Translations under genes and position numbers: made by a program | The notes under the pieces: generated by a model | What the model was told of the DNA's origin: nothing | Databases searched by the model: none | What the model saw: the letters and a program-made list of their open reading frames with translations, nothing else | Shown here: in pieces, positions 2,271-44,477 of the stretch | Layout of the letters: every line of letters starts with the position of its first letter | How positions within the stretch are numbered: the first letter of the stretch is position 1 | From: Isurus oxyrinchus | Lineage: Eukaryota | Length of the DNA stretch: 64,000 bases | Direction of reading: 5' to 3' | NCBI GenBank assembly: GCA_026770705.1 | Contig: JANJGN010000121.1 | Coordinates: 310,001-374,000 of the forward strand

Positions 2271-3259
2271 CCTCTTGTTCCCTGTCCTTCTCAAAGATCC
2301 ATCCCTGCAGCAGGAGCCTGAAGAGTTACTGATGTGGGGCTTAATTTATCAGATTGTAGAATGATCCGGAACAGAAGGATGCCATTTGGCCCATCGAGCC
2401 TGTGCTGGGCCTTTGAAAGATCTGTCCAATTAGTCCCTCTTTCACCTCTGCTCTCTCCTCCACAGCCCTGCAAAATGTCACCTTCAAGTATTTATCCAGT
2501 TCCCCTTCTGAAAGTTCCTGTTGAATCTGCTTCCACCGGCCTTTCAGGCAGTGAGTCAATGGTCTCTCTCTGAGCTGCAAAGTGCTAATGTTCTGAGAAC
2601 TTTAAACTCTGCAGCAGATCAGAGACAATTATGATAACTCAGAATATTTGACAGTTTTACACACAGACAGCTTTGCCTTCCTTCTCTCTTTCAGTTATCT
2701 TGCTCCCTTATTGAAGTATCTAGCAAGGTGAGAATGGACAGGAAGTGTGACTCTGAACAGCCTGTCTATTCTAGGAGCTGTTGTGTTGACTTCATGGGAA
2801 GTCCTGACTTAGATCAGCAAAAGACACAAAATTTCAGGGCATTGTTATCCGTGTCCCAGCATCAGGATAGACTTCGTCCCCCAGTTGGTGTTCCTGATTC
2901 TCTATGCAGCCGATTGCTCCCCTGTCACTGGCTGAACTACACTGGCTCCCAGTCCAGCAATGACTCAAATTTCAAATTCTCATCATCGATTTCTTACCCC
3001 ACCATCCCCCCTCTACACTCCCGATCCCTGTAACCTCCTCCAACCCTAAAACCCTCTGAGATCTCTGCTCTCCTCCAATTCTGCTGTCAGACAGGGAGTC
3101 AGTGTATTTCAGTGAGCACAGCGGTGATGGGTGAATGGGACTTGGTGTGCGTTTGTACACTGGCTCACTGCTGAATCAGTTCCCAATCAGAGCTCAATAA
3201 GAATGATCTTTTACAAAGACTATTAGCCATAAACCTGTCCGAGCTGACGATGTTATTAC

Positions 3260-3299
3260 CTTGGAGAAGTGACAGGAGGAAGTAGGATTTCCCGATCAT
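3260..3299 (-). CDS. Signal-peptide exon (MIGKSYFLLSLLQ) of Siglec-like gene E, whose body lies left of the window
   Basis: ATG at 3299, 13 codons plus 1 nt, then G|gtaata donor. The whole exon is 3260-3341 with a tttctctttcag acceptor. It matches four other leader copies. Confidence 0.8.
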
Positions 3300-3372
3300 A
3301 GTCCACTCCCAAATATTTCATAAGCTTCTGACTCTCAAACTCTGAAAGAGAAAGGAGTTAATGAGACCTCAC

Positions 3373-3890
3373 CTCTTGTCCGACAGCTCTCGAGAGATCA
3401 GAACTGTTTTTGGACAATGTCTTGACAGACTAATTTGATTCTCTGTGGGATGATAGGTGCTCTGCAGAGAGTTACAAGGCTTTAAGAAAGAAAAATATTG
3501 AAGGATTTGCATTTCTATAGCACCTTTCAACACCTCAAGACGTCCCAAAGCTCATGTCTCTGCACTTCCCTCATCCCTTGAGCTAGAAAGATGTTCTGTA
3601 CAACAGACTTGAGTCTCACACCCAGATCTCAATAACCAGTAGAAATCTTTCAAAGGCATCAATCATTGGAATCTGTCTTTATAAAGTCACAACATCAACA
3701 AAGGACGGTGTTGGTGGTGGAAGTGAATTCCAATCGTTCTGTTACTTACCCAGGACCTGTCCGACTGCTCGCCTGGGGAGGAACTGCCCACACGCTCTGC
3801 TTGAGCTGAATGACCTCTTCCTGTGCTGCTCCCTCTGTGTGTTTAATTAGAAAGGGTGGATGTGTCACTGTGAGACAAAATGAGGAAGTG
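3373..3890 (-). promoter_or_regulatory. 5'UTR/promoter module of gene E: UTR exons 3750-3867 and 3373-3461, PU.1/ETS-like AAAATGAGGAAGTG at 3877-3890
   Basis: Canonical ag/gtaagt and ag/gtgagg boundaries. The same module precedes every leader exon in the window. Confidence 0.6.
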
Positions 3891-4104
3891 GGTAATCAGT
3901 GAGAAGATCGAGGATGTTTTGTGCTCTCAGCAAAACGTTTACCATGTGATGATCTGTCAGCTCATATTTGGGCAGCTGTAGTCATGAAGCTTCTCCATTG
4001 GCTCCGTGGGATTAGACTCCTGCCCCTCACCTCGGAGGCTGAAACTCAGGCGATAAGAGTTCCCAATACAGGTCTCTGGCCTTATGATACATTTCAACGA
4101 TCCC

Positions 4105-5830
4105 TGTTATCATTACGGAGGGAGTGCTGCACTGTCAGCGGCACTGTACTGTGGGAGTGCTGCACTATCAGAGGGTCAGTAATGTGGGAGGGCTGCACTG
4201 TCAGAGGGTCAGTAATGTGGGAGTGCTGCACTGTCAGAGGGTCAGTAATGTGGGAGGGCTGCACTGTCAGAGAGTCAGTAATGTGGGAGTGCTGCAACAT
4301 CAGAGGTTCAGTAATGAGGGAGTGCTGCACTGTCAGAGGGTCAGTAATGAGGGAGTGCTGCACTGTCAGAGGGTCAGTAATGTGGGAGGGCTGCACTGTC
4401 AGAGGGTCAGTAATGTGGGAGTGCTGAACTGTCGGCGGGTCTGTACTGAGTGGGTTCCACACAGTTGGAGGGTCAGTATTGAGGGGGTGCCGGACTGTGG
4501 GAGGGTTAGTACTGAGGTAGAGTGGAGTGTGAGGAGATATCCTTTCATGGCAGAGTTTAACTGGAATTTATTTAAACACAATTCTTGTACTGTGTGTTAT
4601 TGCAAAAGAAAGGATTTGAGGAACTAAGTCTTGTTCCCATAAGCCTAAAAATAATTTTCACGGATTTCAATGATTTAGCATTGAAACCTCCCTCTTTGGG
4701 CGCCAGTCTTGATTGAAACAACTCGCACAGCACAGTGGGAGGGTGAGTACTGAGGGAGTGCTGCACTGTGGGAAGGTGAGTACTGAGCGCGGGCTGCACT
4801 GTGGGAGTGTGAGTACTGAGGGAGTGCTGCACTGTGGGAGAGTGAGTACTGAGGGAGTGCTGCACTGTCAGAGGATCAGTAATGAGGGAGTGCTGCACTG
4901 TCAGAGGGTCAGTAATGTGGGAGGGCTGCACTGTCAGAGGGTCAGTAATGTGGGGGTGCCGGACTGTGGGAGGGTTAGTACTGAGGTAGAGCGGAGCGTG
5001 AGGAGATATCCTTTCATGGCAAAGTTTAACTGGAATTTATTTAAACAGAGATTCTTGTACTGTGTGTTATTGCTAAAGAAAGGATTTGAGGAACTAAGTC
5101 TTGTTCCCGTAAGCCTAAAAATAATTTTCACCGATTCAATGATTTAGCAATGAAACCTCCCTCTTGGGGCACCAGTCTTGATTGAAACAACTCGCACAGC
5201 ACTTCGGGAGAGTGAGTACTGAGGGAGTGCTGCACTGTGGGAGGGTGAGTCCTGAGGGAGTACTGCACTGTGGGAGGGTGAGAATTGAGGGAGTGCTGCA
5301 CTGTGGGAGGGGGAGTACTGAGGGAGTGCTGCACTGTGGGAGGGGGAGTACTGAGGGAGGGCTGCACTGTGGGAGGGGGAGTACTGAGGGAGGGCTGCAC
5401 TGTGGGAGGGTGTGTACAGAGGGAGGGCTGCACTGTGGGAGGGTGAGAATTGAGGGAGTGCTGCACTGTGGGAGCGTCAGTACTGAGGGAGTGCTGCACT
5501 GTCAGAGAGTCTGTACCGCGGGAGTGCTGAACTGTCGGAAGGTCAGTAGTGAGGGAGGGATACAGTATCAGAGGATCAGTACTGAGGGAATGCTGCACTG
5601 TGGGTGAGTGAGTACTGAGGGAGTGCTGCACTGCCAGATTGTCATCCATGAGGGAGTGCTGCACTGTCAGAAGGTCAGTGCTGACGGGGTGCTGCACTTG
5701 AAAAGGGTCAATAATGAGGTAGTGCAGCACTGTCAGAGGGACAGTAATGAGGGAGCGCTGCACTGACGGAGGGTCAGCACTGAGGAAATGCTGCACTGTC
5801 AGTTCTGAGCGTGGTCTGCACTGTCCTAAG
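4105..5830. repeat. About 33-nt minisatellite (GGGAGTGCTGCACTGTCAGAGGGTCAGTA(C/A)TGA) interrupted by two copies of a ~215-bp cassette
   Basis: Tandem units visible directly. The cassette ...gagatatcctttcatggc...aactcgcacagcac occurs at ~4520-4730 and ~4985-5200. Confidence 0.9.
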
Positions 5831-6469
5831 TGCATTCTAGGCACTGCCCAAGGTTCCGCCTGATGTCCGTGTAACAACAACATCATGTACACGTCGAGAA
5901 TATTTCTCACTGTGTCGGTGCAGCAAGACAGCTTTGGAATGGCACCACCACTGGCAGGAGTGTGAAACTACAATGTGACATGTTTACATGGGAAATTTCT
6001 ATTATAAAGATGGGCACAGGAATTCGTATGATAGAACAAATGTGACAACATGAAGTAATGTCTTTGAGCCAAAAATTTGGCTTCAAAATAAGAATTTTAA
6101 TCTATAAATATCTACAGAACAGGCTGAGCATTTTAATCAGTTGAGTAAATCAATGTAATTTTATTCATAACCCAAATGCTTCTTACAATCTATCGCAGCA
6201 TGAAAAAGGTGCAGCATTCAGAAAGCACATTCCAATCCAAGAACAGAGTTTAGCAATGTCACATTTCTGTTCATTCCTATTCGACCATGTTGGCTGCACA
6301 CAGCCAGACAATGCCGTGGTTAAGATGTGTCCACACAGCAGGACTGGGGAGCACCAGGTATAAGGAAAAGTTTCAGCTTGCTGAGGAGAAGAAGGAGAAT
6401 CTCTCGTTCCAGGATTCTCTCCGTACATTAAGAAGCAGGCATGCCGATGTTTCATTGCACTCTGTCTGC

Positions 6470-7100
6470 TGATGGGAGTCCGCTTGGAAATTGCTGTTTG
6501 TGCTGATGGAAAGAATAAGCTTTTCATAAATCGAGGGATTGAGAACAAACACAGGGAGGTTATGCTGAACATTTATAAAGCTCTGCTTAGGTCACAACTA
6601 GAGTATTGTGTCCAGTTCTGGTCTCCTCACTTTGGGAAGGAAGTGAGGGTCCTTGAGAGGGTGGGGAGGAGATTGAGCAGAATGGGTCCAGGGATGAGGG
6701 ATTTTAGCTACAAGGTTGGGTTGGAGAAGCTGGGGTTGTTCTCCTTGGAGCAAAGGAGATTGAGGGGGGATCTGATCGAGGTGTACAAGATGATGATGGG
6801 TTTAGATAAGGTAGACAAAGAGAAGCTGTTGCCATTAGCTGATGGGACAAGGACTGGGGGACACAGATTGAAGGTTTTGGGCAGAGGGGGGATGTGAGGA
6901 GGAACTTTTTTACACAGCGAGTGGTAATGAGCTGGAACTCGCTGCCTACGAGGATGGTGGAAGTGGAGACGATGAACGATTTCAAAAGGAAATTGGTTGG
7001 ACACTTGAGAGGAAATAAACTTGCAGGGATACGGGGATAGAGCGGGGGAATGGGACTGACTGGATTGCTCTACAGAGAGACAGCATGGAGTCGATGGGCT
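6470..7100 (+). mobile_element. CR1 LINE 3' fragment (RT C-terminus and 3' end)
   Basis: ORF 6472-6897 contains YKALLRSQLEYCVQFWSPH...LEKLGLFSLEQRRLRGDLIEVYK, a typical CR1 ORF2 end. Confidence 0.9.
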
Positions 7101-7242
7101 GAATGGGCTCCCAGTCTGCTGGAATGCCTCTCTGATACGAAGGTGATTCTAACCAGGACACTGACCAGTTTCATTACAACTTAACCCAATATCACACGTT
7201 ATTTGTCCGCACTGACTGACCAGATTGTTGCTGTACAAAGCT

Positions 7243-7382
7243 TCAAACAGTCTGTCGACTTCCTTTCACTGTTTGTCTCTCCCAGGCACAGACTCCAGCG
7301 ATAGTGATAACCACAGCCACAAGGAATATCACAGCTCGTATTCCCAGGATCAGGATCACGTGCAGAATCTCTCCTCCACTGT
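7243..7382 (-). CDS. Gene A TM/terminal exon SGGEILHVILILGIRAVIFLVAVVITIAGVCAWERQTVKGSRQTV*, with Arg in the TM and no Tyr motif
   Basis: ttctgtgtgttctctag acceptor, phase 1, hydrophobic run. CGA (Arg) at 7336-7338, TGA at 7243-7245. Confidence 0.8.
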
Positions 7383-9060
7383 CTAGAGAACACACAGAAA
7401 GAAATCATCACTGACTCTCCGCTTTCAATCTCTCACTCTGGCTGAACAATCAAGCTTCATATCACTGCAACATTTGCTGTAATATTGACCCATCCACTGG
7501 GATTCAATGTGGAATGAATGTTTTCATTGTAAACACTCGAAGAGTGGACAATTGGAACTTTCCCCTTAGCGTGGAACATTGGTGAGAATGGATCATTGTG
7601 CTGTTGGACTCCCTGTCCAATGTTTCTCTCCATCGCTGTGTACAGGATTGTGCTGTGGAAAATTCTGGAAACGTTTTGTGCAGGGTGGAAATTCATCTCG
7701 GACGTGTGTGCGAATCGGACAGGATCGAGATGGACTCCCCCACGGACTTACACCCCCCGCTTAATAAACAGTTCCAATCTTTACCCAGAGAGAGGGGAGA
7801 ATGTGGAACTCGCTCCCACAGGGAGTGGTTGAGGTGAACAGTATCGATGTATTTAAGGGGCAGGAGGGTCGGTAACCAGAGGGACACAGATTGACGAACC
7901 GGAGGGGGAGATGAGGAGAATTTGTTTTGACAGAGCGAGTTGTTGTGATCTGGAAGGTGCTGCCTGAAAGGGTGGTGGAAGCAGATTCAATAGGAACTTT
8001 CAAAAGGGAAATTGGATAAATACTTAAAGTAGGAAGATGGGGGCAAAGTGGAGTGGTGGTTAGTGGATCTGATTGGATAGAACATTGAAAGACCTGGCAC
8101 AGGCACAATGGACTGAATGGCCTCCTCCTGTGCTGTATCATTCTCCGTTTCCATGATCTCTCCCCCAGTCAGTAACGACTCCAGATCCCTCTTGAAGGCG
8201 ACAGAGAATCAGCAACCACCACACCCACTGACAACACATTGCCGAGGATCCCTACTCTCTGGGAAAAGATGAACTCCCCAACATCCAGCCTATTCCTGCT
8301 TCCCAGAGAGTGTAAACCCTTCAGGGAGGCGCTGAGGAAGTTTTCAATAAAATGACATCAAATCTACCGTTTGAGAAATAATTGAATTCCAATGAACTCA
8401 CAGCTTGTGTAGCAAACTGGGAAGTGGAGTTGCTTGAAAAGCTGGGAAACACAAGGATTAAGGGCTACAATGCCACCACTGGTGGGAGGCTGTAACTACA
8501 GCGTGACGTTTACATAGGCAATCCCCATTATGAACAAGGACATTGGACATCATGTGAAATATGGGCACTGGAAAGGTGAGAACATGATGTAAGCTTTTCA
8601 CCAACAGGAATTCTCCTCCTAAACCTCTCCACCTCTCTCTTACTCTCAAATACACAAAGAAAATCACACAAATCAGATAAGGAGGATTTGGGACCGGTGA
8701 TTGTTCGAAGGGTGAGCTTTCAGGAAGCTTCTTAAAGGGAGAGAGAGAGTTGGAGAGGCAGAGAGTATCTGTGAGAGTCTCTATGCATCTGAGTGTCTGT
8801 AATAGACTTTGTAATTTCCATATTCTTGCATAAATATGAATGGGAACACAAATCCCAGAATTCAGGCCAACTCTCCAGGGCAGTACTGAGGGAGGTCAGG
8901 TAGCCCACAGAGGAGTGTGTGTTAGTGTGTTTGTGTGTGAGTGTGTCTTTCTGTGTGGTCATATATGTGTGTCTGCATGTGTCTACTTAGATGTGTATGT
9001 TTGAGGGTGTTTGTGTAGTGTTCGAATCTGAGAGAGATGTTGAAGTCTGTGTACACTCAC

Positions 9061-9214
9061 GTTCCACAGTGATGGTTATGAATCCCTCCACTGCTCCATG
9101 TTCATTCTCTGCCACACACTGATAGTCTCCAGTGTCCCTGGATGTAACGTGAGGAATCACAAACCACAGCTCATTGTTGGAACTTGTTCTGTTCATTGGG
9201 ACATTAAGATGTCA
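9061..9214 (-). pseudogene. Gene A decapitated second C2 exon (3' half only, HLNVPMNRT...GFITITVE)
   Basis: Matches the 3' half of the gene C C2 repeats and keeps a C|gtgagt donor. The 5' half is replaced by unrelated sequence with an in-frame TGA at the junction. Confidence 0.8.
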
Positions 9215-9536
9215 GGGAGGGAATCAAGAACCCCGTTCACAGGATTACCAACAGAAAGTGAACAACAATTTATACTTAATGGGAAGAGAGTGCTGATTGG
9301 TTGGCAATTGGTCTCTGATAGGTGGCGGTGTTGCCATGGAGAATGGTGTGTGCGAGATGTAAAGTTTAGACAGCTTGTCTCTTTATTCAGCAATAATCAT
9401 ATAAAGATCAATTAACTTCTATCGACTTTGAAGCACTTAGAGAGGCCTTAGAATGTGGATACTGAGAATGGGCTGCACTGTCAGAGGGTCAGCGCTGAGG
9501 GAGTGCTGATGTGGAATGAATGGTGCATGTAATTAC

Positions 9537-9833
9537 CTTGCACAGTTAGTACGAGGGTCCGCTCCGATGAAACAGATGGATATCTCACTCTGCAGCTGAG
9601 AGTGTGTCCGTGGTGTTTGAGTGATGGGATCAGGGTCAGAACAGAAGTATAGGTCAGAGTGACACCATGCTGAGTTACAGTGTTTGAGACTGATCCAGGT
9701 ACGTCAGTGGGAGTGTCCCAGGTTAAGACAGGTGCTGCTGTTCCATTGCACGTTGTGTTGAAGGTGCAGCTCACATCCACACGCTTTCCTGCAATAATTT
9801 CAGCAGGGAATATCGTGGGTTTATCTGTGAAAT
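9537..9833 (-). CDS. Gene A C2-set Ig exon (Siglec domain 2) DFTDKPTIFPAEIIAGKRVDVSCTFNTTC...SCRVRYPSVSSERTLVLTVQ
   Basis: 297 nt, phase 1-1, tag/gtaatt boundaries. It has the extra B-C loop Cys used for the Siglec V-C2 interdomain disulfide. Confidence 0.9.
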
Positions 9834-10646
9834 CTAACAGACAGAGAATGGATCCTTTTAGAGAAATATAACATGAAGCATCAGTTCAAATAGAAAGCAC
9901 AGTCCCACAAGAGAAAGCACTTTTACAAGGATGATATCAGATCTGAGAGGATACAATGATCAGGAGAGAATTTCCTATTTTCAGACTTAGTGGAGTTTCT
10001 GTCACTCAGATGAATTCACTTCCACTTTGAGACAATTGAATTGACAATCCCAGGTGAGGGCGGGGGAGCAGCTCACAGTTCCTGACACAGTGGCTTGTTA
10101 CTTTCTCCGAAATCTGCCAGATTTAAATTCTATCCTGTCGCCAGCAGGAGAGAATCCATTTGAACCAATCACTGAACCGGCATCTAAAGCAGATGATCAG
10201 GTTATTGATCACATTGCTGTTTCTGGGAGCTTCCTGTGCACAAATTGGCTGCTGTGTGTCCTATATTACAACAAGGGCTACATTTCAAGAATTATTTCAA
10301 TGGTTGTGAATCCATTTGCGACATCCAGATGTGGTGAAAGGTGCTATAGAAATGCAAATCTTTCTTTTGTTGATATGTAAGAATTTTAAACAGGATTAGG
10401 TAGACTGATGGGAGTGGATAACCTGATAACATTGATGGACACAGTCAATACATTTAATCATTGATATTAAAGTGAGTATTAGAGGTTGTTTTAGGACTGA
10501 ACTGGAAGCTATTAGCAGGTTATTGAGAATCAGACAGTGTGTTATAATAAGCTGTGTTTTGTGTTAATATGTAAATGTCACAGTTCGTGTTATTTCCCAT
10601 TGAGTGTTGAATGTGAGTTGTTGAGTAATTATAACACAGCACTTAC

Positions 10647-11015
10647 CAGAAACGTGAAGCTGGGTTACAGGGTAATAGTTATGGCTCGGACCATTGTCAA
10701 ATTCTATTCTGAAAAAATAAGGTCCTGCATCTTCCCGTCTGATGTTGTTTATAATCAGGGAACAGTCGCCATCTTTCAGGTTTCCAGACAGCCGGGTCCG
10801 ATTGTGGAACCGTGGTAACTCGTGACTGTGATCCTTGGAGTGAAAGGCAATGGGAGCCCAGGGAATCTGTTCCTCATTATTAAACCAGACTCCACCTCGC
10901 GGTTGGTTTTCCAGACACGATGGATAACTGTAATGACATGGAATCTGTACACACGAACTTTCCTGTGCTGTCACCTCTCGTGGATTGTCACCTTTCCACT
11001 CTTGTGAGGGTTCAG
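10647..11015 (-). CDS. Gene A V-set exon V2 (essential Arg intact, extra Cys)
   Basis: 369 nt, phase 1-1. Siglec hallmarks: QEW, CVQIPC, DGDCSL, DAGPYFFRIE (no F-strand Cys, Arg AGA at 10708-10710). Confidence 0.92.
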
Positions 11016-11079
11016 CTGGGGAGAGAAATCTCAATATTGAACTCTGGATGGTTTGTGGATCCACTAGACTCAAAATTTA

Positions 11080-11900
11080 CTGATGAGGCTGAATTGGGGG
11101 GATGGTCAATACTGAGGAAAATGGCAACAAATTATTTTGGCAGGAAGAATAGAAAAACAGGATATTATTTAAATGGAGACAGGATGCAGAATGCAGTACA
11201 GAGGGATCTGGGTGTCCTTGTACATGAATCACAGAAAGTCAGCATTCAGGAACACCACGGAATGAGGAAGGCAAGTGGAATGTTGGCCTTTATTGCAAAG
11301 GGATGGAGTATAAAAGGAGGGAAGTCTTGCAACAGCTGCACAGGGTGAGATTGTATCAGGAGCAGTGTGTACAGTTCTAGTCTCCTTACTTAGGGAGGGA
11401 TAGACTTGCATTGAAGGCAGTTCAGAGAAGCTTCACTGGGCTGATTCCTGGGATTAAAGGGTTTGTCCTGTGAGGAAATGTTGAGCAGGTTGGGCCTGTA
11501 TCCATTGGAGTTTAGAAGAATGAGGGGTGAGCTTATTGAAACATATCCGATTCCGAGGGGGCTTGACAGGGTGGATGCTGGGAGGATGTTTCCCCCTCGT
11601 GGGGGAATCTAGAACCAGGGAGCACAGTTTCGGAATGAGGGCTCTCCCATTTAAGACTGAGATGAGGAGGAATTTCCTCTCTCAGAGGGGCGCTAGCCTG
11701 TGGAATTCTCTTCCCCAGAGAGCAGTGGAGGCTGGGCCATTGAATAGACTCAAGGCTGAGTGAGGCAGGTTTTTGATCGACAAGGGAGTCAAGGGTTTGG
11801 GGAACAGGCAGGAAAATGGAGTTAAGGCCACAACCAGATCAGTGAGAGCAGGCTGGAGGGGCCGAATGGCCTGCTCCTGTCCCTATTTCTTATGTTCCTA
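11080..11900 (+). mobile_element. CR1 LINE fragment
   Basis: YYLNGDRMQNAVQRDLGVLVHESQKV and RRNFLSQR segments, followed by a CR1-like 3' tail. Confidence 0.85.
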
Positions 11901-11989
11901 CATTCTTACCTTCTTAAAATATTAAAGCTGCAGAATAAACATGCAAGTGACTGACCCGCTCGACCCACCTTCCATCAGTGGCTGGAGGA

Positions 11990-13110
11990 GGTTACACAGA
12001 TAGGGAGGTTTGTGGGGGCTGTAGGAGGTAACAGAGATAGGGAGGGCTGTAGATACTGGAGGAGGTTACGCAGATAGGGAGGGTGGTAGGACCTGGAGGA
12101 GGTTGCGGAGATAGGGAGGGCTGTAGGGATTTGAGGAGTTTATGGAGATGGGGAGCGTGTAGGGACTGGAGGAGGCTGCAAGGGCAGAGAGGGTTTTAGG
12201 GGCAGGAGGAGTTTACAGGGATAGGAAGAGTTGTAGGGGCTGGACGGATTGCAGAGGTAGGGAGGGTTGGAAAGGCTGGTGGAGGTTTCAGAGGTAGGGA
12301 AGGTTGCAGGGACTGGAGGAGTTTACAGAGATGGGGGAGTTTTTGGGGCAGGATGGGGTTACAGAGATAGGGAGGGTTGTAGGGGCAGGACGAGGTTACA
12401 TAGATATGGAGTGTGGCTGGGGCTGAGGGAGGCTACAGAGATAGGGAGGGTTATAATGGCTGGAGGAGGTTACAGAGATAATGGAAGCTTTTAGGGACTG
12501 GAGGAGGTTACAGAGATAGGGAGGGTTGTAGTGGGCTGGATGAGGTGACAGAAATATGAAGGGTTGTAAGAGATGGAGCAGCTTACAGAGATTGGGAGAG
12601 GTATTCGGTCTGGAGGAGGTTGCAGAGATAGGGGAGGTTGTTAGGACTGAAGGAGGCTACAAATATCGCGAGGGTTATCAGGGCTTGAGGAGGTTAAAGA
12701 GATAGGGAGGGGTGTTGGGTCCGGAGGAGTTTGCAGTGATAGGATTGGTTTTCGGGATTGGAAGAAGGTACTGAGATAGGAGGGTTGTAGAGACTGGAGG
12801 AGTCTCCTGAGATAGGGAGGGTTGTAGGGACTGGAGGAGGCTCCTGAGATAGGGAGGGTTGTAGGGACTGGAGGAGGCTCCTGAGATAGGGAGGGTTGTA
12901 GGGACTGGAAGAGGCTCCTGAGATAGGGAGGGTTGTAGGGACTGGAGGAGGCTCCTGAAATAGGGAGGGTTGTAGGGACTGGAGGAGGCTCCTGAGATAG
13001 GGAGGGTTGTAGGGACTGGAGGAGGCTCCTGAAATAGGGAGGGTTGTAGGGACTGGAGGAGGCTCCTGAGATAGGGAGGGTTGTAGGGACAGGAGGAGAC
13101 TCCTGAGATA
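11990..13110. repeat. About 31-32 nt purine-rich minisatellite (GGGAGGGTTGTAGGGACTGGAGGAGGCTCCTGAGATA)
   Basis: Near-perfect units at 12770-13110, degenerate units leftward. Confidence 0.9.
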
Positions 13111-13139
13111 GGGAATGTTGCCGTGGATGAAGGAAGAGG

Positions 13140-14360: not shown

Positions 14361-14738
14361 CAGAAACCTGAAGCTGGGTTACAGGGTAATAGTTATGGCT
14401 TGGACGATTGCCAAATTTTATCGTGAAAAAATAAGGTCCTGCATCTTCCCGTCTGATGTTGTTTATAATCAGGGAACAGTCGCCATCTTTCAGGTCTCCA
14501 GACAGCCGGGTCCGATGGCGGAACCGTGGTAACTCGTGACTGTGACCCTTGGAGTGAAAGGCTATAGACCATTTAGACCATTTGTTCCGTATGTAGCTTC
14601 TCATTTTCCAGATTCCGACATGTGGTTTCTTTACCAAATCTGATGGATAACTGTAATGACATGGAATCTGTACACACGAACCTTTCTGCGCTGTCACCTC
14701 TCGTGGAGTGTCACCTTTCCACTCTTGTGACAATCCAA
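14361..14738 (-). CDS. Gene A V-set exon V1 (essential Arg replaced by Thr, YFFTIKF)
   Basis: 378 nt, phase 1-1, tttctctccccag/gtaagt boundaries, open frame, Siglec Cys pattern. ACG at 14422-14424. Confidence 0.9.
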
Positions 14739-19148: not shown

Positions 19149-19188
19149 CTTGGAGAAGTGACAGGAGGAAGTAGGATTTCCCGATCAT
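19149..19188 (-). CDS. Gene A signal-peptide exon MIGKSYFLLSLLQ
   Basis: ATG at 19188 and G|gtaata donor. Phase 1 joins V1 to give ...LLQVGLS-QEW. Confidence 0.85.
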
Positions 19189-19779: not shown

Positions 19780-20004
19780 GGTAACCAGTGAGAAGATCGA
19801 GGATGTTTTGTGCTCTCAGCAAAACGTTTACCATGTGATGATCTGTCAGCTCATATTTGGGCAGCTGTAGTCATCAAGCTTCTCCATTGGCTCCGTGGGA
19901 TTAGACTCCTCCCCCTCACCTCGGAGGCTGAAACTCAGGCGATAAGAGTTCCCAATACTGGTCTCTGGCCTTATGATACATTTCAACGATCCCTGTTATC
20001 ATTA

Positions 20005-21810
20005 AGGAGGGAGTGCTGCACTGTCAGTGGGACTGTACTGTGGGAGGGCTGCACTATCAGAGGGTCAGTACTGAGGGAGTCTGCACTGTCAGAGTGTCAG
20101 TACTGAGGGAGTGCTGCACTGTCAGCGGCACTGTACTGTGGGAGGGCTGCACTATCAGAGGGTCAGTAATGTGGGAGGTCTGCACTGTCAGAGGGTCAGT
20201 ACTGTGGGAGTGCTGCAACATCAGAGGGTCAGTAATGAGGGAGTGCTGCACTATCAGAGTGTAAGTAATGTGGGAGTGCTGAATTGTCGGAGGGTCTGTA
20301 CTGAGTGAGTTCCGCACAGTTGGAGGGTCAGTATTGAGGAGGTGCCGGACTGTGGGAGGGTTAGTACTGAGGTAGAGTGGAGTGTGAGGATATATCCTTT
20401 CATGGCAAAGTTTAACTGGAATATATTTAAACACAATTCTTGTACTGTGTGTTATTGCAAAAGAAAGGATTTGAGGAACTAAGTCTTGTTCCCGTAAGCC
20501 TAAAAATAATTTTCACAGATTTCAATGATTTAGCATTAAAACCTGCCTCTTTGGGCGAAAGTCTTGATTGAAACAACTCGCACAGCACAGTGGGAGGGTG
20601 AGTACTGAGGGAGTGCTGCACTGTGGGAGGGTGAGTACTGAGGGAGTGCTGCACTGTGGGAGGGTGAGTACTGAGGGAGTGCTGCACAGTGGGAGGGTGA
20701 GTACTGAGGGAGTGCTGCACTGTCAGAGGTTCAGTAATGAGGGAGTGCTGCACTGTCAGAGGGTCAGTAATGTCGGAGGGCTGCACTGTCAGAGGCTCAG
20801 TAATGTGGGAGGGCTGCACTGTCAGAGGGTCAGTAATGTGGGAGGTCTGCACTGTCAGATGGTCAGTAATGAGGGAGTGCTGCACTGTCAGAGGGTCAGT
20901 AATGTGGGAGGGCTGCACTGTTAGAGGGTCACTAATGTGGGAGTGCTGCACTGTCGGAGGGTCTGTACTGAGTGAGTTCCGCACAATTGGAGGGTCAGTA
21001 TTGAGAGTGTGCCGGACTGTGGGAGGGTTAGTACTGAGGTAGAGCGGAGCGTGAGGAGATATCCTTTCATGGCAAAGTTTAACTGGAATTTATTTAAAAA
21101 GAGATTCTTGTACTGTGTGTTATTGCAAAAGAAAGGATTTGAGGACCTAAGTCTTGTTCGCGTAAGCCTAAAAATAATTTTCACGGATTTCAATGATTTA
21201 GCAATGAAACCTCCCTCTTTGGGCACCAGGCTTGATTGAAACAACTCGCACAGCACTTCGGGAGAGTGAGTACTGAGGGAGGGCTGCACTGTGGGAGGGT
21301 GTGTACAGAGGGAGGGCTGCACTGTGGGAGGGTGAGAAGTGAGGGAGTGCTGCACTGTGGGAGCGTCAGTACTGAGGGAGTGCTGAACTGTCGGAAGGTC
21401 AGTAGTGAGGGAGGGATACAGTGTCAGAGGGTCACAACTGAGGGAATGCTGCACTGTCAGTTTGTCAGCACTGTGGGAGTGCTGCACAGTCAGAAGGTGT
21501 GTACCGAGGGAGTGCCAAACTGTCAGAAGGTCAGTAGTGAGGGAGGGATACAGTATCAGAGGATCAGTACTGAGGGAATGCTGCACTGTGGGTGAGTGAG
21601 TACTGAGGGAGTGCTGCACTGTCAGATTGTCATCCATGAGGGAGTGCTGCACTGTCAGAAGGTCAGTGCTGACGGGGTGCTGCACTTGAAAAGGGTCAAT
21701 AATGAGGTAGTGCAGCACTGTCAGAGGGACAGTAATGAGGGAGCACTGCACTGACGGAGGGTCAGCACTGAGGAAACGCTGCACTGTCAGTTCTGAGCGT
21801 GGTCTGCACT
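20005..21810. repeat. 33-nt minisatellite with two ~215-bp cassettes (duplicate of 4105-5830)
   Basis: Same unit and cassettes, different unit counts. Confidence 0.9.
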
Positions 21811-22459
21811 GTCCTAAGTGCATTCTAGGCACTGCCCAAGGTTCCGCCTGATGTCTGTGTAACAACAACATCATGTACACGTCGAGAATATTTCTCACGG
21901 TGTCGGTGCAGCAAGACAGCTTTGGAATGGCACCACCACTGGCAGGAGTGTGAATCTACAATGTGACATGTTTACATGGGAAATTTCTATTATAAAGATG
22001 GGCACAGGAATTCGTATGATAGAAAAAATGTGACAACATGAAGTAATGTCTTTGAACCAAAAATTTGGCTTCAAAATAAGAATTTTAATCTATAAATATC
22101 TACAGAACAGGCTGAGCATTTTAATCACTTGTGTTAATCAATGTAATTTTATTCATAACCCAAATGCTTCTTACAATCTATCGCAGCATGAAAAAGGTGC
22201 AGCATTCAGAAAGCACATTCCAATCAGAGAACAGAGTTTAGCAACGTCACATTTCTGTTCATTCCTATTCGACCATGTTTGCTGCACACAGCCAGACAAT
22301 GCCGTGGTTATGATGTGTCCACACAGCAGGACTGGGGAGCACCAGGTATAAGGAAAAGTTTCAGCTTGCTGAGGAGAAGAAGGAGAATCTCTCGTTGCAG
22401 GTTTCTCTCCGTACATTAAGAAGCAGACATGCCGATGTTTCATTGCACTCTGTCTGCTG

Positions 22460-23090
22460 ATGGGAGTCCGCTTGGAAATTGTTGTTTGTGCTGATGGAAA
22501 GAATTAGCTTTTCATAAATCGAGGCATTGAGTACAAACACAGGGAGGTTATGCTGAACATTTATAAAGCTCTGGTTAGGTCACAACTAGAGTATTGTGTC
22601 CAGTTCTGGTCTCCTCACTTTGGGAAGGAAGTGAGGGTCCTTGAGAGGGTGGGGAGGAGATTGAGCAGAATGGGTCCAGGGATGAGGGATTTTAGCTACA
22701 AGGTTGGGTTGGAGAAGCTGGGGTTGTTCTCCTTGGAGCAAAGGAGATTGAGGGGGGATCTGATCGAGGTGTACAAGATGATGATGGGTTTAGATCAGGT
22801 AGACGAAGAGAAGCTGTTGCTATTAGCTGATTGGACAAGGACTGGGGGACACAGATTGAAGGTTGTGGGCAGAGGGGGATGTGAGGAGGAACTTTTTTAC
22901 ACCGCGAGTGGTAATGAGCTGGAACTCGCTGCCTACGAGGATGGTGGAAGCGGAGACGATGAATGATTTCAAAAGGAAATTGGATGGACACTTGAGGGGA
23001 AATAAACTTGCAGGGATACGGGGATAGAGCGGGGGAATGGGACTGACTGGATTGCTCTACAGAGAGACAGCATGGAGTCGATGGGCCAAA
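22460..23090 (+). mobile_element. CR1 LINE 3' fragment (duplicate of 6470-7100)
   Basis: ORF 22550-22966 carries the same RT C-terminal motifs. Confidence 0.9.
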
Positions 23091-23133
23091 TGCCGTCCTT
23101 CTGTTCCATGACGAGATTGTTGCGTACAAATCT

Positions 23134-23273
23134 TTAAACAGTCTGTCGACTTCCTTTCACTGTTTGTCTCTCCCAGACACAGACTCCAGCGATAGTGATA
23201 ACCACAGCCACAAGGAATATCACAGCTCGTATTCCCAGGATCAGGATCACGTGCAGAATCTCTCCTCCACTGT
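23134..23273 (-). CDS. Gene B TM/terminal exon with TM Arg and tail WERQTVKGSRQTV*
   Basis: 140 nt like gene A. CGA at 23227-23229, TAA at 23134-23136. Confidence 0.75.
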
Positions 23274-24393
23274 CTAGAGAACACACAGAAAGAAATCATC
23301 ACTGACTCTCCGCTTTCAATCTCTCACTCTGGCTGAACAATCAAGCTTCATATCACTGCAACATTTGCTGTAATATTGACCCATCCACTGGGATTCAATG
23401 TGGAATGAATGTTTTCATTGTAAACACTCTAAGAGTGGACAATCGGAACTTTCCCCTTAGCGTGGAACATTGGTGAGAATGGATCATTGTGCTGTTTGAC
23501 TCCCTGTCCAATGTTTCTCTCCATCGCTGTGTACAGGATTGTGCTGTAGAAAATTCTGGAAACGTTTAGTGCAGGGTGGAAATCCATCTCGGACGCGTGT
23601 GCGAATCGGGCAGGATCGAGATGGACTCCCTCACGGACTTACACCCCCCGCTTAATAAACAGTTCCAATCTTTACCCAGAGAGAGGGGAGAATGTGGAAC
23701 TCGCTCCCACTGGGAGTGGTTGAGGTGAATAGTAGCAAATTAGGAAGGGAAATTGCTTGAAAAGCTTGGAGATGCAAGGGATAAATGCTACCGTGCCACC
23801 ACTGGTGGGAGAGTGTAACTACAGCGTGATGTTTACATAGGCAATCCCCATTATGAACAAGGACATTGGACATCATGTGAAAAATGGGCACTGGAAAGCT
23901 GAGAACATGATGTAAGCTTTTCACCAACAGGAATTCCCTTCCTAAACCTCTCCACTTCCCTCTTATTCTCAGATACTCAAACAAAATTTCACACAAAATC
24001 ACGTAAGAGGTTTTAGGACAGGTGACTGGTCAAAGGATTAGGTTTCAGGAAACTTCTTAAAGGAGGATAGAGAGTTGGAGAGGCAGAGAGTATCTGTGAG
24101 TATCTCTGTGCATCTGAGTGTCTGTAATAGACTTTGCAATTTCCATATTCTTCCATAAATATGAAAGGGAACACAAAACCCAGAATCTAGGTCAATACTC
24201 CGGTGCAGCACTGAGGGAGGTCAGGTAACCCACAGGGCAGATTGTGATAGTGTGTTTGTTTGTGAGTGTGTCTTTGTGTGTGCTCATACATGTGGGATTG
24301 TGTGTCTGCAGGTGTCTGCTTAGGTCTGTATATTTGTTTGTATTTGTGTAGTGTTTGAACCTGAGAGTGATGTTGAAGTCTGTGTACACTCAC

Positions 24394-24546
24394 GTTCCAC
24401 AGTGATGGTTATGGACACCTCCACTGCTCCATGTTCATTCTCTGCCACACATTGATAGTCTCCAGTGTCCCTGGATGTAATGTGAGGAATCACCAACCAC
24501 AGCTCATTGTTGGAACTTGTTCTGTTCATTGTGATATTGAGATGTC
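24394..24546 (-). pseudogene. Gene B decapitated second C2 exon
   Basis: Same breakpoint (ccTGACATCT) and same replacing sequence as at 9214. Confidence 0.8.
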
Positions 24547-24870
24547 AGGGCAGGACTCAACAAGACAGCTCGCAGGTTTACCAACAGAAAATGAACAACA
24601 ATTTATATTTAAAGGGAAGAGAGTGCTGATTGGTTGGCAAGTGGTCTCTGATGAGAGGAGGTGTTGCCATGGAAAATAACGTGTGCAAGCTGTAAAGTTT
24701 AGACAGCTTGTCCCTTCATTCAGCAATAATCAATTAAAGATCAGTTAACTTCTATCGACTGTGAAGCAAATTTGAGTGGCCTGAGAATATGGATACTGAG
24801 AACGGGCTGCACTGTCAGAGGGTCTGCGCTGAGGGAGTGCTGATGTAGAATGAAGGGTGTCCGTACTTAC

Positions 24871-26890: not shown

Positions 26891-27258
26891 CAGAAACATG
26901 AAGCTGGGTTACAGGGTAATAGTTATGGCTCCGACCATTGTCAAATTCTATTCTGAAAAAAAAAGTCCTGCATCTCCCCATCTGATGTTGTTTATAATCA
27001 GAGAACAGTCGCCATCTTTCAGGTCTCCAGACAGCCGGGTCCGATGGTGGAACCGTGATAACTCGTGACTGTGATGCTTGGAGTGAAAGGCTATAGACAA
27101 TGTATTCCATTTGTCCCTCCTCATATTCCAGATTCCGACACGTGTTTTCTCTAACAAATGTGATGGGTAATTGTAATGACATGGAATCTGTACACATGAA
27201 CCTTTCTGTGCTGTCACCTCTCGTGGAGTGTTACTTTCCCATTCTTGTGACAGTCCAA
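26891..27258 (-). pseudogene. Gene B V-set exon with 1-nt frameshift in a T9 run
   Basis: 368 nt, not a multiple of 3. GGAC-T9-CAGA here versus GGACCTTATTTTTTCAGA in the intact copies. The domain is split over ORFs 26948-27277 and 26799-27197. Confidence 0.8.
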
Positions 27259-33455: not shown

Positions 33456-33495
33456 CTTGGAGAAGTGACAGGAGGAAGTAAGATTTCCCGATCAT
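33456..33495 (-). CDS. Gene B proximal signal-peptide exon MIGKSYFLLSLLQ
   Basis: ATG at 33495 and G|gtaata donor. UTR exon 33946-34063 and GAGGAAGT at ~34078 lie upstream. Confidence 0.75.
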
Positions 33496-35590: not shown

Positions 35591-35630
35591 CTTGGAGAAG
35601 TGACAGGAGGAAGTAAGATTTCCTGATCAT
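35591..35630 (-). CDS. Gene B distal (second) signal-peptide exon MIRKSYFLLSLLQ
   Basis: ATG at 35630 with an intact donor. It has its own UTR exon 36074-36191 and PU.1-like site 36201-36214. Confidence 0.7.
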
Positions 35631-38418: not shown

Positions 38419-38535
38419 TTATAAATTCCCATAAACAGAATCCTTGGCAAATTCACAGTTTGCGTAAAGATCATCATCTGTATCAGGATTGACTCCGCGG
38501 TTAGATTTCATTTCCAGATCCTTCTCATCTTTCTT
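38419..38535 (-). CDS. Gene C terminal cytoplasmic exon KKDEKDLEMKSNRGVNPDTDDDLYANCEFAKDSVYGNL* (C-terminal ITIM SVYGNL)
   Basis: tttctgtttctattacag acceptor, phase 0, 39 codons to TAA. The other frames close early. Confidence 0.75.
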   Translation of the reverse strand, partial: KKDEKDLEMKSNRGVNPDTDDDLYANCEFAKDSVYGNL

Positions 38536-40095: not shown

Positions 40096-40739
40096 GAACA
40101 ATTGTGAAAACCCTTTCATTGAAACGTAGGGCCTTAGTGTTGTGTTGTAAACAAACTGTTAACCCTTTGTGTCCTGACTCTGTGGCGTGATTCCTGTGTA
40201 AAGCTGAGCAGTTGGTGAGCGAGTTTCAATTCACTGCTCAGTCCAGGTGTTGAGGTGGATCTTCTGAAGGAGCAGATGTAGCTCAGCGCTCCTTAAAAAT
40301 GTGAGAGACTGAACAACGTGTAAGAGGACGAGAGAGAGAATGAGAAGGAGAGCATTAGTGGAGATAAGAGCGAGTAAATGAGAGAGTGTATGAGAAGAGA
40401 GCATTAGTGGAGGTAAGAGAGAGTGAATGAAACATGGAAAAAGGAAAGAGATTGTATTCACTAACAAAAGAAAGGTTTTCATTTATATAGCGCCTTTCAC
40501 AAACTCAGGAGGTCACAAGGTATCTTATGGTCCGGGTCAACACTGCCTGTTACAGGACTGAGTTGTGAAACAGTGAGTGTTGGATGAGATGTTAAACAGT
40601 AGGTGAACATCAAAACTCTTCAGGGGCTGTGAAGCGTTTTGGATTGTAAAAGGTGCTATAGAAATGCAAGTTCTTTCTATAAGGAGAGAAGGTTGAAGAA
40701 AACATGTTCAAAAACAACCAATTAAACCTTCACACTTAC

Positions 40740-40836
40740 TTTCTCACACACTTGAAGATGAAGAATCCACTCAGTCCAACACTCAAACAGATTCCAGCTC
40801 CAAGCAATCCTGCTTTCCATTCATTGGAATCTCGCC
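40740..40836 (-). CDS. Gene C TM exon RDSNEWKAGLLGAGICLSVGLSGFFIFKCVRK (uncharged TM)
   Basis: 97 nt, tttacag/gtaagt boundaries, phase 1-2, paralog of 61547-61643. Confidence 0.85.
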
Positions 40837-41059
40837 CTGTAAAATCAGCCAATGAATGACTCCGGTACAGTTTGAGAATGGTTCCCTATGTCCATGTCGT
40901 GTTCTGAACTTGTGAAGTGATATTGTCTATGCATGAAAGGTCTATACAAATAACATTTATCTATGTAATATTTATTGATAATATCCATGTACATGCAGGT
41001 TTCTATAAGGAGGATTCACATATAACAGAGGTGCCAAGCTGCTGAGGTGACACACTGGA

Positions 41060-42060
41060 CTACATACACACCAAACAGCGGAAACAACATGCTATAGACA
41101 GAGCAAAGCGATCCCACAACCAACGGGTCAGATCTAAGCTCTGCAGTCCTGCCACATCCAGTCATGAATGGTGATGGACAACTAAAGATCTAACAGGAGG
41201 AGGATGTTCCACAAATATCCCCATCCTTAATGATGGGGGAGCTCAGCACATCAGTGCAAACGACAAGGCTGAAGCATTGGCAACCATGTTCAGCCAGAAG
41301 TGCTGAGTGGATGCTCCATCTTGGCCTCCTCCAGAGGGTCCCAGCATCACAGATGTCAGCTTTCAGACAATTCGATTGACTCCACGTGACATCAGGAATC
41401 AGCTGATGATACTGGATACAGCAAAGACTATTGGCCCTGGCAACAACCCAGCAACTGGAAATAGTGTGGCTACAAATGCGGGTAAGAGGCTGGGAACTCT
41501 GTGGTGAGTAATTCAACTCCTGACTCTCCAAAGCCTGTCCACCGTTGACAAGGCACAAGTCAGGAGTGTGATGGAATAATCTGCAATTGCCTGAATAAGT
41601 GCAGCTCCAACAACACTCAAGAAGCTCGACACCATCCAGGAGCAGCTTGTTTGATCGACAGCCCATCCACCAGCATAAACATTCATACCCTCCACCACTG
41701 GCACACAATGGCAGCAGTGTGCACCATCTACAAGATGCACTGCAGCAACTCACCAAGGCTCCTTCGACAGCACCTTCCAAACTCTTAACCTCTTCCACCA
41801 AGACAGTTCCAAGTCAGTGAGGTGTGTGACTTGGAAGCGAACTTGAGGTGGTGGTCTGCCCTGGGACTTGGAAATATATCGGCCGTTCCTTCACCATCAC
41901 TGGGACAAAATCCTGGAACTCCCTCCCTAACAGCACTGTGGGTGCGCCTACACCACATGGACTGCAGTGGTTAAAGAAGGCAGCTCACCACCACCTTCTC
42001 AAGGGGCAGTTACAGATGGGCAATAATTTCTGGTCTTGTCAACAATGCCCACATCCCATG
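41060..42060 (+). mobile_element. Non-LTR retrotransposon 3' fragment (CR1/L2-group, clade not resolved); same family at 53470-54180(-), 57600-58060 and 60700-61140
   Basis: Shared MEYSPLAWMSAAPTTLKKLDT...WNSLPNSTVG...KAAHHHLLKG coding remnants. Confidence 0.7.
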
Positions 42061-42099
42061 AGCTAATAACACGAGAACGTTCAATTCTGTGTAACTCAT

Positions 42100-42381
42100 G
42101 TTCCACAGTGATGGTTATAAATCCCTCCACTGCTCCATGTTCATTCTCTGCCGCACACTGATAGTCTCCAGTGTCCCTGGATGTAACGTGAGGAATCACC
42201 AACCACAGCTCATTGTTGGAACTTGTTCTGTTCATTGGGACATTAAGATGTCACCACGTCAGGTTAGAAGCTGGGAAGCTTTCGACAGAGCAGATTATCA
42301 CTGCAGCATTTCCCTCAATTATATTGATCGATGAAGCGTTAATCATATCAAGAGAAGTAATTGATGGGTTCCGTGGTGCAT
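42100..42381 (-). pseudogene. Gene C C2 repeat 5: in-frame TGA and dead donor
   Basis: 282 nt. TGG TGA CAT at 42251-42253. Donor reads C|atgagt instead of gtgagt. Confidence 0.85.
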
Positions 42382-43352
42382 CTAAATACAAATAAAGGTT
42401 TCATTGTCAGCAAACACAGTGCACAGCAAGACTCCATGATACATCTCTCTCTATTTGGTGTCTATGTGCATTTCAAGAGTTCTTTCCTGTTTTAAGTTCC
42501 TGTGTCAACTTTTATAATGGTCACTGCCGGTGTTTTTCTTTTTGCACATTCATGGGAAGTGGATGTATCTATCTAGACCAGCATTTATTACCCATCCCTA
42601 ATTGCCCTTGAGGAGGTGGTGGTGAGTTTTTCACACCCATAGAATTCCCAGCCTCTGACCTGCTCCTGTAGCCACAGTATTTATGGCCGGTCCAGTTAGT
42701 AGTTTGGTTAACATCCCCCAGGATGTTGATTGTGGGGGATTCAGTGATAGTAAACTCACTGAACATCAAGGGGAGATGGTTAGATTCTCTCTTGTTGGAC
42801 ATGATCACTGCCTGGTAATTGTGATGCATTAATTGTCTCAGCCCAAGCTGAGTGTTATTCAGCTCTTGCTGCATGTGGATATGTAAACTGTCACGCTGTA
42901 ATTACAGCCATCTACCAGAGGAGACACTGTCGGTCTAGAAGAAAAGAAAATGTCTTTCACATCATCAGGATGTTCACAGGGATTTGACAGTGGAGGAATT
43001 GCTTTAGAATAATGGGGTATTGAGTGATAAACCTACAATTCTCTGTGCAGGGGGCTGCTCGTCCAATACAGGGTCTTGTTCAGCTGATGTCGTCAGTGTT
43101 TCAGAGCAGAATCTGGAGCAACACTCCAGTGCAGCACAGGGAGAACAGACAACACACACATGTCTGTGTGTGTGTGTGAGCAAGCACACGTGTGATTTTG
43201 TATGTATGCTTCTGTGTGTGAGCATGCAGGCGTGCACACCTGTGCACCTGTGGGATTCCACATGAATGCTTGTTTGTGTGCACGTGTGTATGAGTGTGTA
43301 TGAGTGTGTCTGTGTATATGTGAGAGTAATGTTGAAGCTTGTGTTAACTCAC

Positions 43353-43634
43353 GTTCCACAGTGATGGTTATGGACCCCTCTACTGCTCCATGTTCATTCT
43401 CTGCCACACACTGATAGTCTCCAGTGTCCCTGGATGTAACGTGAGGAATCACCAACCACAGCTCATTGTTGGAACTTGTTCTGTTCATTTGGACATTAAG
43501 ATGTCACCACGTCAGGTTAGAAGCTGGGAAGCTCTCGACAGAGCAGATTATCACTGCAGAATTCCCCTCAATTATATTGATCGATGAAGCGTTAATCATA
43601 TCAAGAGAATTAATTGAGAGATTCAATGGTGCAT
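43353..43634 (-). pseudogene. Gene C C2 repeat 4: in-frame TGA with intact splice sites
   Basis: 282 nt. TGA at 43504-43506 replaces Arg (CGA/CGC in the intact copies). Confidence 0.8.
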
Positions 43635-44279
43635 CTAAATATATGGAAAGATTTTAAAGTGAGCAACATAGTGCACAAGACGCCATGCATCATCTCTCTG
43701 TATCTGATGTCCGAATGCATTTCCAGATAACTTCCCTCAGGATAAGGTCTTATGGCACATTTATAATTGACACTGCTTATGTAAACTGTCACACTGCAGT
43801 TGCATTCTCCCACCAGTAGAGGTGTTGCCCATCTAGAATGAAAGAAGTTTGCTTTCACGTCCTCAGGATTTCGCAAAGGGCTTGACAGGCAATGTTTGAT
43901 TGAGGGAGCACTGAGGGGTAAATCTACAATTCTCTGTTCAGGAGGTTGCTCATCCAATTCAGGGTCTTGCTGATCTGGAGTTTACCGTCCTTCAACACAG
44001 AATCGGAGCTGATACCGAGACTCCAGTGCAGCACTGAGAACTCTCGCGTGTGTATGTGTGTGTTTGTGTTACTGCACATGTGAGTGTGTTTGTGTGTGTA
44101 TGCACACATGTAGCTGTGTGTGCGCATGCACGCGTGTCTGTGTGTCTACGTCTGTACATGAGTGAGAGTACGTGTATGTGTGTGTCTATGTGTGGGCATG
44201 AATATGTGTGTGTGTTTGAGATGGGTGTGTATTTTCCTGTGTATGTGTTTGTACGTGTATGACTGTCTGTGTATACTTA

Positions 44280-44469
44280 NNNNNNNNNNNNNNNNNNNNN
44301 NNNNNNNNNNNNNNNNNNNNNNNNNNNNNNNNNNNNNNNNNNNNNNNNNNNNNNNNNNNNNNNNNNNNNNNNNNNNNNNNNNNNNNNNNNNNNNNNNNNN
44401 NNNNNNNNNNNNNNNNNNNNNNNNNNNNNNNNNNNNNNNNNNNNNNNNNNNNNNNNNNNNNNNNNNNNN
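44280..44469. other. N gap; others at 46288-46447, 63303-63572 and 63604-63793
   Basis: Runs of n next to TG/CA repeats or minisatellite. The 63 kb gaps could hide gene D exons. Confidence 0.95.
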
Positions 44470-44477
44470 TAACTCAC

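Follow-up and report, generated by a model that had tools for sequence, protein, structure and literature searches.

The window analysed here, a 64,000-nucleotide stretch of the Isurus oxyrinchus genome, carries on its minus strand a short exon that buries one arginine in a hydrophobic membrane anchor and ends the protein soon after it, which raises the question of whether this exon anchors an activating receptor and, if so, with which signalling adaptor it would assemble. A preliminary description of this DNA had proposed an FcR-gamma/DAP12-coupled activating receptor with a preference for FcR-gamma. We propose that the exon, which we call the cassette, is probably the membrane anchor of an adaptor-dependent activating receptor whose predicted partner is most likely an aspartate-bearing dimer. 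The conserved buried arginine, the 12-residue tyrosine-less tail and an ITIM-bearing neighbour speak for the general part of the earlier proposal, whereas its preference for FcR-gamma is not borne out. In the gene that we call A, the exon and its parts are:

7221 to 7382, minus strand: full transmembrane/tail cassette exon, 162 nt, entered in phase 1, with donor CTG/GTCAGT at 7221/7220.
7243 to 7382, minus strand: coding part of the cassette exon, including the stop codon TGA at 7245-7243.
7336 to 7338, minus strand: codon CGA of Arg16, the buried basic residue, which is the same in all 18 cassette sequences.

Translated on the minus strand, the exon (7382-7221) yields D-SGGEILHVILILGIRAVIFLVAVVITIAGVCAW-ERQTVKGSRQTV-stop, and the reading from 7383 is DSGGEILHVILILGIRAVIFLVAVVITIAGVCAWERQTVKGSRQTV followed by the stop. 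The acceptor AG lies at 7384-7383, and entry in phase 1 is usual for exons of the Ig superfamily. The module totals 46 residues and is laid out as a stalk of 5 residues, an apolar stretch of 29 residues and the 12-residue tail ERQTVKGSRQTV, which contains no tyrosine and no ITIM, ITAM or any other tyrosine motif. Arg16 is the single basic residue of the anchor and falls inside its best 19-residue hydrophobic window, with uncharged flanks of 7-10 residues before it and 18 after it. A 48-nt core of the cassette occurs twice in the window (7312-7359 and 23203-23250), where the expectation from shuffled sequence is 0. The span 7243-7382 that had been picked out initially coincides exactly with the coding part of the exon; the arginine (codon 7338-7336) does lie in the outer, N-terminal half of the transmembrane segment, inside the hydrophobic window, and the nearly tailless C-terminus holds as well, as the tail has 12 residues without tyrosine and the stop is upstream of a last exon that is UTR only.

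The use of the exon was followed in Logan contigs of four public runs (X1, X5, X6 and X7), three from one organism and the fourth from another, mapped on 5950-11100. That these runs are cDNA was a guess, for which the exact removal of introns argues: introns 9536-7383 and 10646-9834 are cut out precisely in all four runs, with GT..AG ends on the minus strand, and the contigs of all four join by splicing the second V exon (V2, to 10647), the C2 exon (9833-9537) and the cassette exon (from 7382). As the contigs of four runs carry the junction 9537/7382 with GT..AG ends, the cassette exon is present in mRNA, which speaks against the concern, voiced with the earlier proposal, that it might be absent from the message. 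The cassette exon is not the last one; beyond the stop it reaches the donor at 7221 and joins an exon at 6502:

6140 to 6502, minus strand: terminal 3' UTR exon, acceptor ...ttccatcag/CA, AATAAA at 6165-6160, 3' end approximate.

The junction 7221/6502 is seen as joints in X1 and X7, as a 19-nt loose end in X6 and as a 25-nt overhang of an X5 contig, and contig coverage ends near 6122-6170, beside the AATAAA. The stop precedes this last junction by 22 nt, so the last exon is entirely 3' UTR and the tail of 12 residues is genuine. With its stop so placed the message should escape nonsense-mediated decay, for which the usual rule is 50-55 nt. There is no room for further tail exons, because the leader exon of the next gene (MIGKSYFLLSLLQ) sits at 3299.

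Two candidates for a longer tail were considered and rejected. The first was a set of tblastn matches to the 'cytoplasmic' part of protein P0019 at 3207-3840, which proved to be the leader region of the next gene, absorbed into the run-on NCBI model P0019. The second was an open frame of 105 codons in the 3' UTR exon (6500-6183, minus strand), in phase with the cassette and conceivable as a relic tail. It was rejected as coding: none of 105 family proteins matches it, the differences between copies A and B (7 in 90 residues) look neutral by eye, expressed paralogues have a 1-nt insertion just upstream, and the position of the cassette stop is old, being common to catsharks. The frame that continues the cassette phase through 6183-6500 (minus strand) ends 20 nt before the AATAAA, probably by chance.

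A few residues of the contigs differ from gene A: A33V was seen in each of the four runs, L11Q and R36G in three of them. These variants match exactly the great-white-shark proteins P0011 and P0012; the allele of gene A itself (Ala33) was not seen among the RNA contigs of the four runs. As the contigs carry paralogue variants, expression is established for the family rather than for gene A's own allele. At the Leu11 codon (7351-7353, variant 7352 A>T) the expressed paralogues corresponding to P0011 and P0012 have glutamine, a second polar residue within the anchor, five residues before the arginine. The structure of the 3' UTR is not alike between copies. After the cassette exon gene A has about 120 extra bases, which include the GTCAGT donor (7099-7222, compared with 23087-23120), and this insert is absent from the second copy, gene B, and from some expressed paralogues; some contigs continue unspliced past the cassette exon, with the GT changed to AT.

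Upstream of the cassette, gene A consists of the following exons, so that the full order is leader (19188-19149), V1 (14738-14361), V2 (11015-10647), C2 (9833-9537), cassette (7382-7221) and UTR (6502 to about 6140):

19149 to 19188, minus strand: leader exon MIGKSYFLLSLLQ, assigned to gene A (leader positions).
14361 to 14738, minus strand: V1 exon, V-set, with FFTIKF instead of FFRIEF and an in-phase splice to V2; V-V models are P0011, P0012 and P0098.
10647 to 11015, minus strand: V2 exon, V-set/Ig_CD22, the arginine of YFFRIEF kept; junction 10647/9833.
9537 to 9833, minus strand: C2-set exon (Pfam C2-set_2); junctions 10647/9833 and 9537/7382 in four runs.

Pfam assigns V-set and Ig_CD22 (PF24518) to both V exons and C2-set_2 to 9833-9537, and gene A has the domain order of Siglecs, an N-terminal V-set of the Siglec/CD22 type followed by a C2-set. 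The in-phase splice of V1 to V2 yields ...VS/AEPSQEWKG, as it does in the database models P0001 and P0098. The strand-F arginine that contacts sialic acid in the YFFR motif is present in V2 (GPYFFRIEF) and absent in V1 (FFTIKF). By its domains and its YFFR motif gene A is a Siglec-like receptor, which may bind sialoglycans. Its closest proteins belong to the great white shark, with 93% identity to P0001 over V2, which places the window in a lamniform shark; NCBI has named them automatically, as "CD33-like" and "Siglec-12/13/14". The intron between C2 and cassette contains, at 9062-9211 on the minus strand, an I-set exon of which the 5' half is missing and the 3' half is open; 48 of its 50 residues are identical to residues 280-329 of the basking-shark protein P0018, and the observed splice skips it. 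Gene A appears to originate from a longer V-C2-I-set receptor, and the same relic is found in gene B, near 24341-24560.

Gene A shares the window with further genes, of which the elements relevant here are:

23134 to 23273, minus strand: coding part of the cassette in gene B, with A33V and the stop TAA.
40718 to 40840, minus strand: uncharged transmembrane exon of the inhibitory gene C (NEWKAGLLGAGICLSVGLSGFFIFKCVRK).
38422 to 38439, minus strand: C-terminal ITIM of gene C, SVYGNL.
55789 to 61713: 3' end of gene D, likewise of the inhibitory type.

Gene C runs from a leader at 51849 through V, C2 and four I-set exons to the uncharged anchor (40840-40718) and the ITIM SVYGNL (38439-38422). Its DNA is about 94% identical to that of gene A over the C2 region and 87-90% over the V region, and gene A has in it an inhibitory counterpart with a close ectodomain. 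The window contains a tandem cluster of paired receptors (genes A, B, C and D). Gene B has the cassette behind a single V and a single C2 exon, and both cassette copies lie within a segmental duplication of 15.9 kb and about 95% identity; their coding parts differ by one base, giving A33V. Comparing exon with flank (1/137 vs 15/490 differences between copies A and B, Fisher p = 0.22) is of no help here, the copies being too young to inform. The V exon of gene B has a 1-nt deletion in a T-run at 26955-26966 (minus strand), CCTTATTTTTTC reading CTTT-TTTTTTC, which shifts the frame just upstream of the YFFR sialic-acid motif, and gene B is either a pseudogene or contains a homopolymer assembly error. 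The initial statement that the transmembrane segment is conserved in gene B is accordingly correct for the exon, but for one residue (A33V), although the V exon of that gene is frameshifted as assembled.

Several repeated elements accompany these genes. The leader exon MIGKSYFLLSLLQ is found five times on the minus strand (3279-3299, 19168-19188, 33475-33495, 35610-35621 and 51829-51849), each time within a repeated block of 1.2-1.8 kb, and two copies are found upstream of gene B. A leader of this kind is where the run-on end of the NCBI model P0019 seems to lie. Long imperfect tandem repeats occur between and within genes at 4000-5900, 20000-21900 and 11970-13120, the first two of which translate to repeated SLSTHPPTVQH-like units. 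The four I-set exons of gene C (42020-45793, minus strand) are near-identical, with 88-96% identity to P0018 or P0082, and are separated by assembly gaps (N runs at 44280-44469 and 46288-46447), so that their copy number may be uncertain.

The conservation of the cassette beyond this window was assessed by a 46-residue profile search and word-based searches, which gave 16 database cassettes from nine species and, with the window copies A and B, a set of 18 sequences. Run against 1.84 billion representative proteins, the profile returned nine matches, all of them elasmobranch, and detected no similarity to the anchor in non-elasmobranch proteins; against solved structures it returned only a chance match, an endoglucanase (E 0.68). 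The motif ILGIRAxIF with its invariant arginine is present in 15 database proteins of 8 shark species and, in a looser form, in one stingray:

Siglec-like, in Carcharodon, two Scyliorhinus and two Chiloscyllium species and Rhincodon: P0001, P0002, P0008, P0011, P0012, P0038, P0091, P0098, P0099 and P0102.
CD22-like multi-Ig, in Chiloscyllium punctatum and Hemiscyllium: P0100, P0101 and P0105.
SLAM-like, in Scyliorhinus torazame and Mustelus: P0103 and P0104.
Siglec-like with the looser anchor LAVRGVLF, in Hypanus (stingray): P0086.

According to Pfam and the NCBI names the ectodomains of these proteins differ in kind. The preliminary description had raised the question of whether the arginine is conserved across shark relatives, and it is invariant throughout the set, the window copies and the stingray included. 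ILGIRAxIF is invariant within sharks. The uncharged run after the arginine is exactly 18 residues long in 16 of 17 shark sequences, the exception being a run-on gene model. The tails are 2-13 residues long and always without tyrosine. Over three receptor families and three shark orders the arginine, the residues beside it and the spacing of 18 residues stay constant, and as one anchor is found on unrelated ectodomains (Siglec-like, CD22-like and SLAM-like), the constraint seems to be on the anchor itself. Most Siglec-like relatives have uncharged anchors and long ITIM tails, with motifs such as LLYANI and SVYGNV. A conserved anchor module with ITIM-bearing sisters is how a module for adaptor docking should look, unlike a decoy or a disposable signal.

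We propose that a long apolar helix anchors the Siglec-like ectodomain of gene A (leader, V1, V2 and C2) and buries one arginine, which presumably cannot stay alone in the bilayer. For the arginine, the most likely partners would be the two aspartates of an adaptor dimer that is disulfide-linked and bears ITAM or YINM, the candidates being dimers of the DAP12, DAP10, FcR-gamma or CD3-zeta type. Paired in this way, the receptor could be exported to the cell surface and would turn the binding of a ligand into an activating signal, one that would oppose the ITIM-bearing gene C with its near-identical ectodomain. Adaptor binding and activating signalling by receptors of the gene A type are what we infer from the sequence, and on this footing the reading of an adaptor-coupled activating receptor is well supported.

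As to which adaptor is used, published work on pairs with DAP12 places the receptor lysine and the adaptor aspartate both at about transmembrane position 9, and in pairs with FcR-gamma the arginine is at about position 4 and the aspartate at position 3 (PMC8102735). A 2026 review likewise describes the arginine of CD89 as 'near the top' of the membrane and the basic residue of DAP12 partners as 'central' (PMC13107469). We compared the depth of the shark arginine with adaptor anchors taken from solved structures:

DAP12 aspartate (2L34): 9 apolar residues before, 15 uncharged residues after.
FcR-gamma aspartate (8YWA): 5 apolar residues before, 15 uncharged residues after.
Shark arginine, catsharks (counted after Asp8): 7 apolar residues before, 18 uncharged residues after.
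Shark arginine, lamniforms and orectolobiforms (counted after Glu5, with His8 intervening): 10 apolar residues before, 18 uncharged residues after.
Stingray arginine: 8 apolar residues before, 15 uncharged residues after.

Measured from the outer face the arginine would thus lie at the depth of the DAP12 charge, and from the inner face somewhat higher than the aspartate of either adaptor. In the FcR-gamma subclass the arginine is expected among the first ~4 anchor residues, whereas here 7-10 apolar residues precede it; compared with the DAP12 type, the N-terminal side is 7-10 against 9 residues, the side after the charge 18 against 15, and the basic residue is arginine and not the usual lysine. 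The geometry is ambiguous to slightly DAP12-like, and by outer-face depth it appears to fit DAP12/DAP10 slightly better than FcR-gamma. Provided that an adaptor is used at all, we lean slightly towards a partner of the DAP12/DAP10 type, regard one of the FcR-gamma/zeta type as possible and clearly second, and hold another or shark-specific chain to be rather improbable.

Docking of the cassette to FcR-gamma, or to a related zeta chain, instead of DAP12 is the alternative that fares best, and we consider it unlikely but serious. Its basic residue is an arginine, as in the FcR-gamma partners CD89 and KIR2DL4 (PMC13107469, PMC8102735), the 18 apolar residues after it put it high in the membrane as seen from the cytoplasmic face, and CD89 still supports assembly when its arginine is shifted one helical turn deeper (PMC13107469). 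As the residue is arginine and not lysine and its position is high from inside, FcR-gamma stays in consideration. Against it stand the 7-10 apolar residues before the arginine, to be set beside 5 for the FcR-gamma and 9 for the DAP12 aspartate, and the published rule, in which FcR-gamma pairs have position 3-4 and DAP12 pairs position 9 (PMC8102735). At position -3 from the cassette arginine there is a leucine and no asparagine. Partners of FcR-gamma of the NxxR type have asparagine there. The known activating Siglecs, moreover, signal through DAP12 or DAP10 (PMC7226832, PMC4042635). The apolar run before the arginine, the missing upstream asparagine and the known use of DAP12/DAP10 by Siglecs together make us lean away from FcR-gamma. 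The earlier view that the arginine position favours FcR-gamma is hence not supported by the count of preceding residues, and the sequence gives no ground for the corollary that the adaptor would be an unusual one for a Siglec.

The arginine might also do without a partner. Were it to snorkel at the outer interface, the 18 residues A17-W34 alone could just span the bilayer, weakening the need for an adaptor; this is physically possible but seems unlikely, as a very hydrophobic and conserved segment, VILILGI, would be left outside the bilayer. A further alternative is a non-signalling decoy or an ER-retained receptor, in which the arginine would be a retention or degradation signal and the short-tailed form would compete for ligand. 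The tail is indeed devoid of motifs, and buried basic residues do retain unassembled chains in the ER (PMC13107469), yet a decoy needs no precise anchor, and here the arginine, its flanks and its spacing are fixed over the three families and three orders, which makes this reading improbable. Finally, the small residues (D-S-G-G) ahead of a C-terminal hydrophobic stretch could recall a cleaved GPI-attachment signal, the arginine then never residing in a mature membrane helix, but this is hardly tenable given a stretch of 26-29 residues with conserved sequence and an invariant arginine, followed by a conserved, charged 12-residue tail (ERQTVKGSRQTV), as a disposable signal would be expected to have neither such conserved sequence and arginine nor a charged tail.

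Returning to the adaptor-coupled anchor, a buried basic residue with an adaptor is textbook knowledge, and the proteins themselves are in automatic annotation ("Siglec-14", "CD33-like"). What is new here is one fixed cassette that would serve three shark receptor families; a literature search on shark Siglecs, shark adaptors and the motif ILGIRA yielded no relevant paper. The pairing of activating with inhibitory Siglecs is considered a trait of mammals and of their CD33-related Siglecs. Fish genomes were described as lacking CD33-related Siglecs in a study of fish Siglecs based on teleosts (PMC7226832). The elasmobranch sequences show a large CD33/MAG-like expansion, with ITIM forms and what would be a dedicated activating anchor. 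As a tentative and bolder idea, galeomorph sharks, and perhaps rays, may have a universal cassette (ILGIRAxIF, an 18-residue spacer and a short basic tail) shuffled onto three kinds of ectodomain and docking to a partner other than the mammalian Siglec adaptor, be it FcR-gamma/zeta or a shark-specific chain. If true, it would be an independent and much older solution to paired receptors than the mammalian LRC/KIR modules. The module being one defined piece of 46 residues, a partner identified once would apply to three shark receptor families, and the locus should be useful to comparative immunologists.

Among known systems the closest likeness is to the human pairs Siglec-14/Siglec-5 and Siglec-16/Siglec-11, whose activating members likewise have an ectodomain of V-set and C2-set, an anchor with a basic residue, a short tail and an ITIM-bearing neighbour with a near-identical N-terminal domain pair. 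The layout of genes A and C is the one described for Siglec-5/14 (PMC4042635), and these mammalian pairs signal via DAP12 (PMC4042635; PMC7226832). Unlike Siglec-14 and -16, the shark receptor has an anchor without detectable similarity outside elasmobranchs and an adaptor coupling predicted from sequence, its cassette is also carried by CD22-like and SLAM-like receptors, and in gene A two V domains stand in tandem.

The outer-half arginine and the short tail are shared with receptors coupled to FcR-gamma (CD89/FcalphaRI, KIR2DL4, macaque KIR3DS, LILRA, OSCAR and GPVI), in which, however, the arginine is at about transmembrane position 4, near the top, and not at 8-11 as in sharks, and the apolar run of 7-10 residues before it has no counterpart. 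In macaque KIR, too, the exon of the activating anchor is a mobile module that has been recombined with various ectodomains (PMC8102735). With receptors coupled to DAP12 (activating KIR2DS/3DS, NKp44, TREM and NKG2C) the cassette has in common a short tail and paired inhibitory relatives, and it may also share a basic residue about 9 residues into the anchor, near the depth of the DAP12 aspartate. Those receptors mostly have a lysine with 11-14 apolar residues after it, where the shark cassette has an arginine and 18. Their anchors share only the central basic residue (PMC13107469), in contrast to the strong sequence conservation of the shark cassette.
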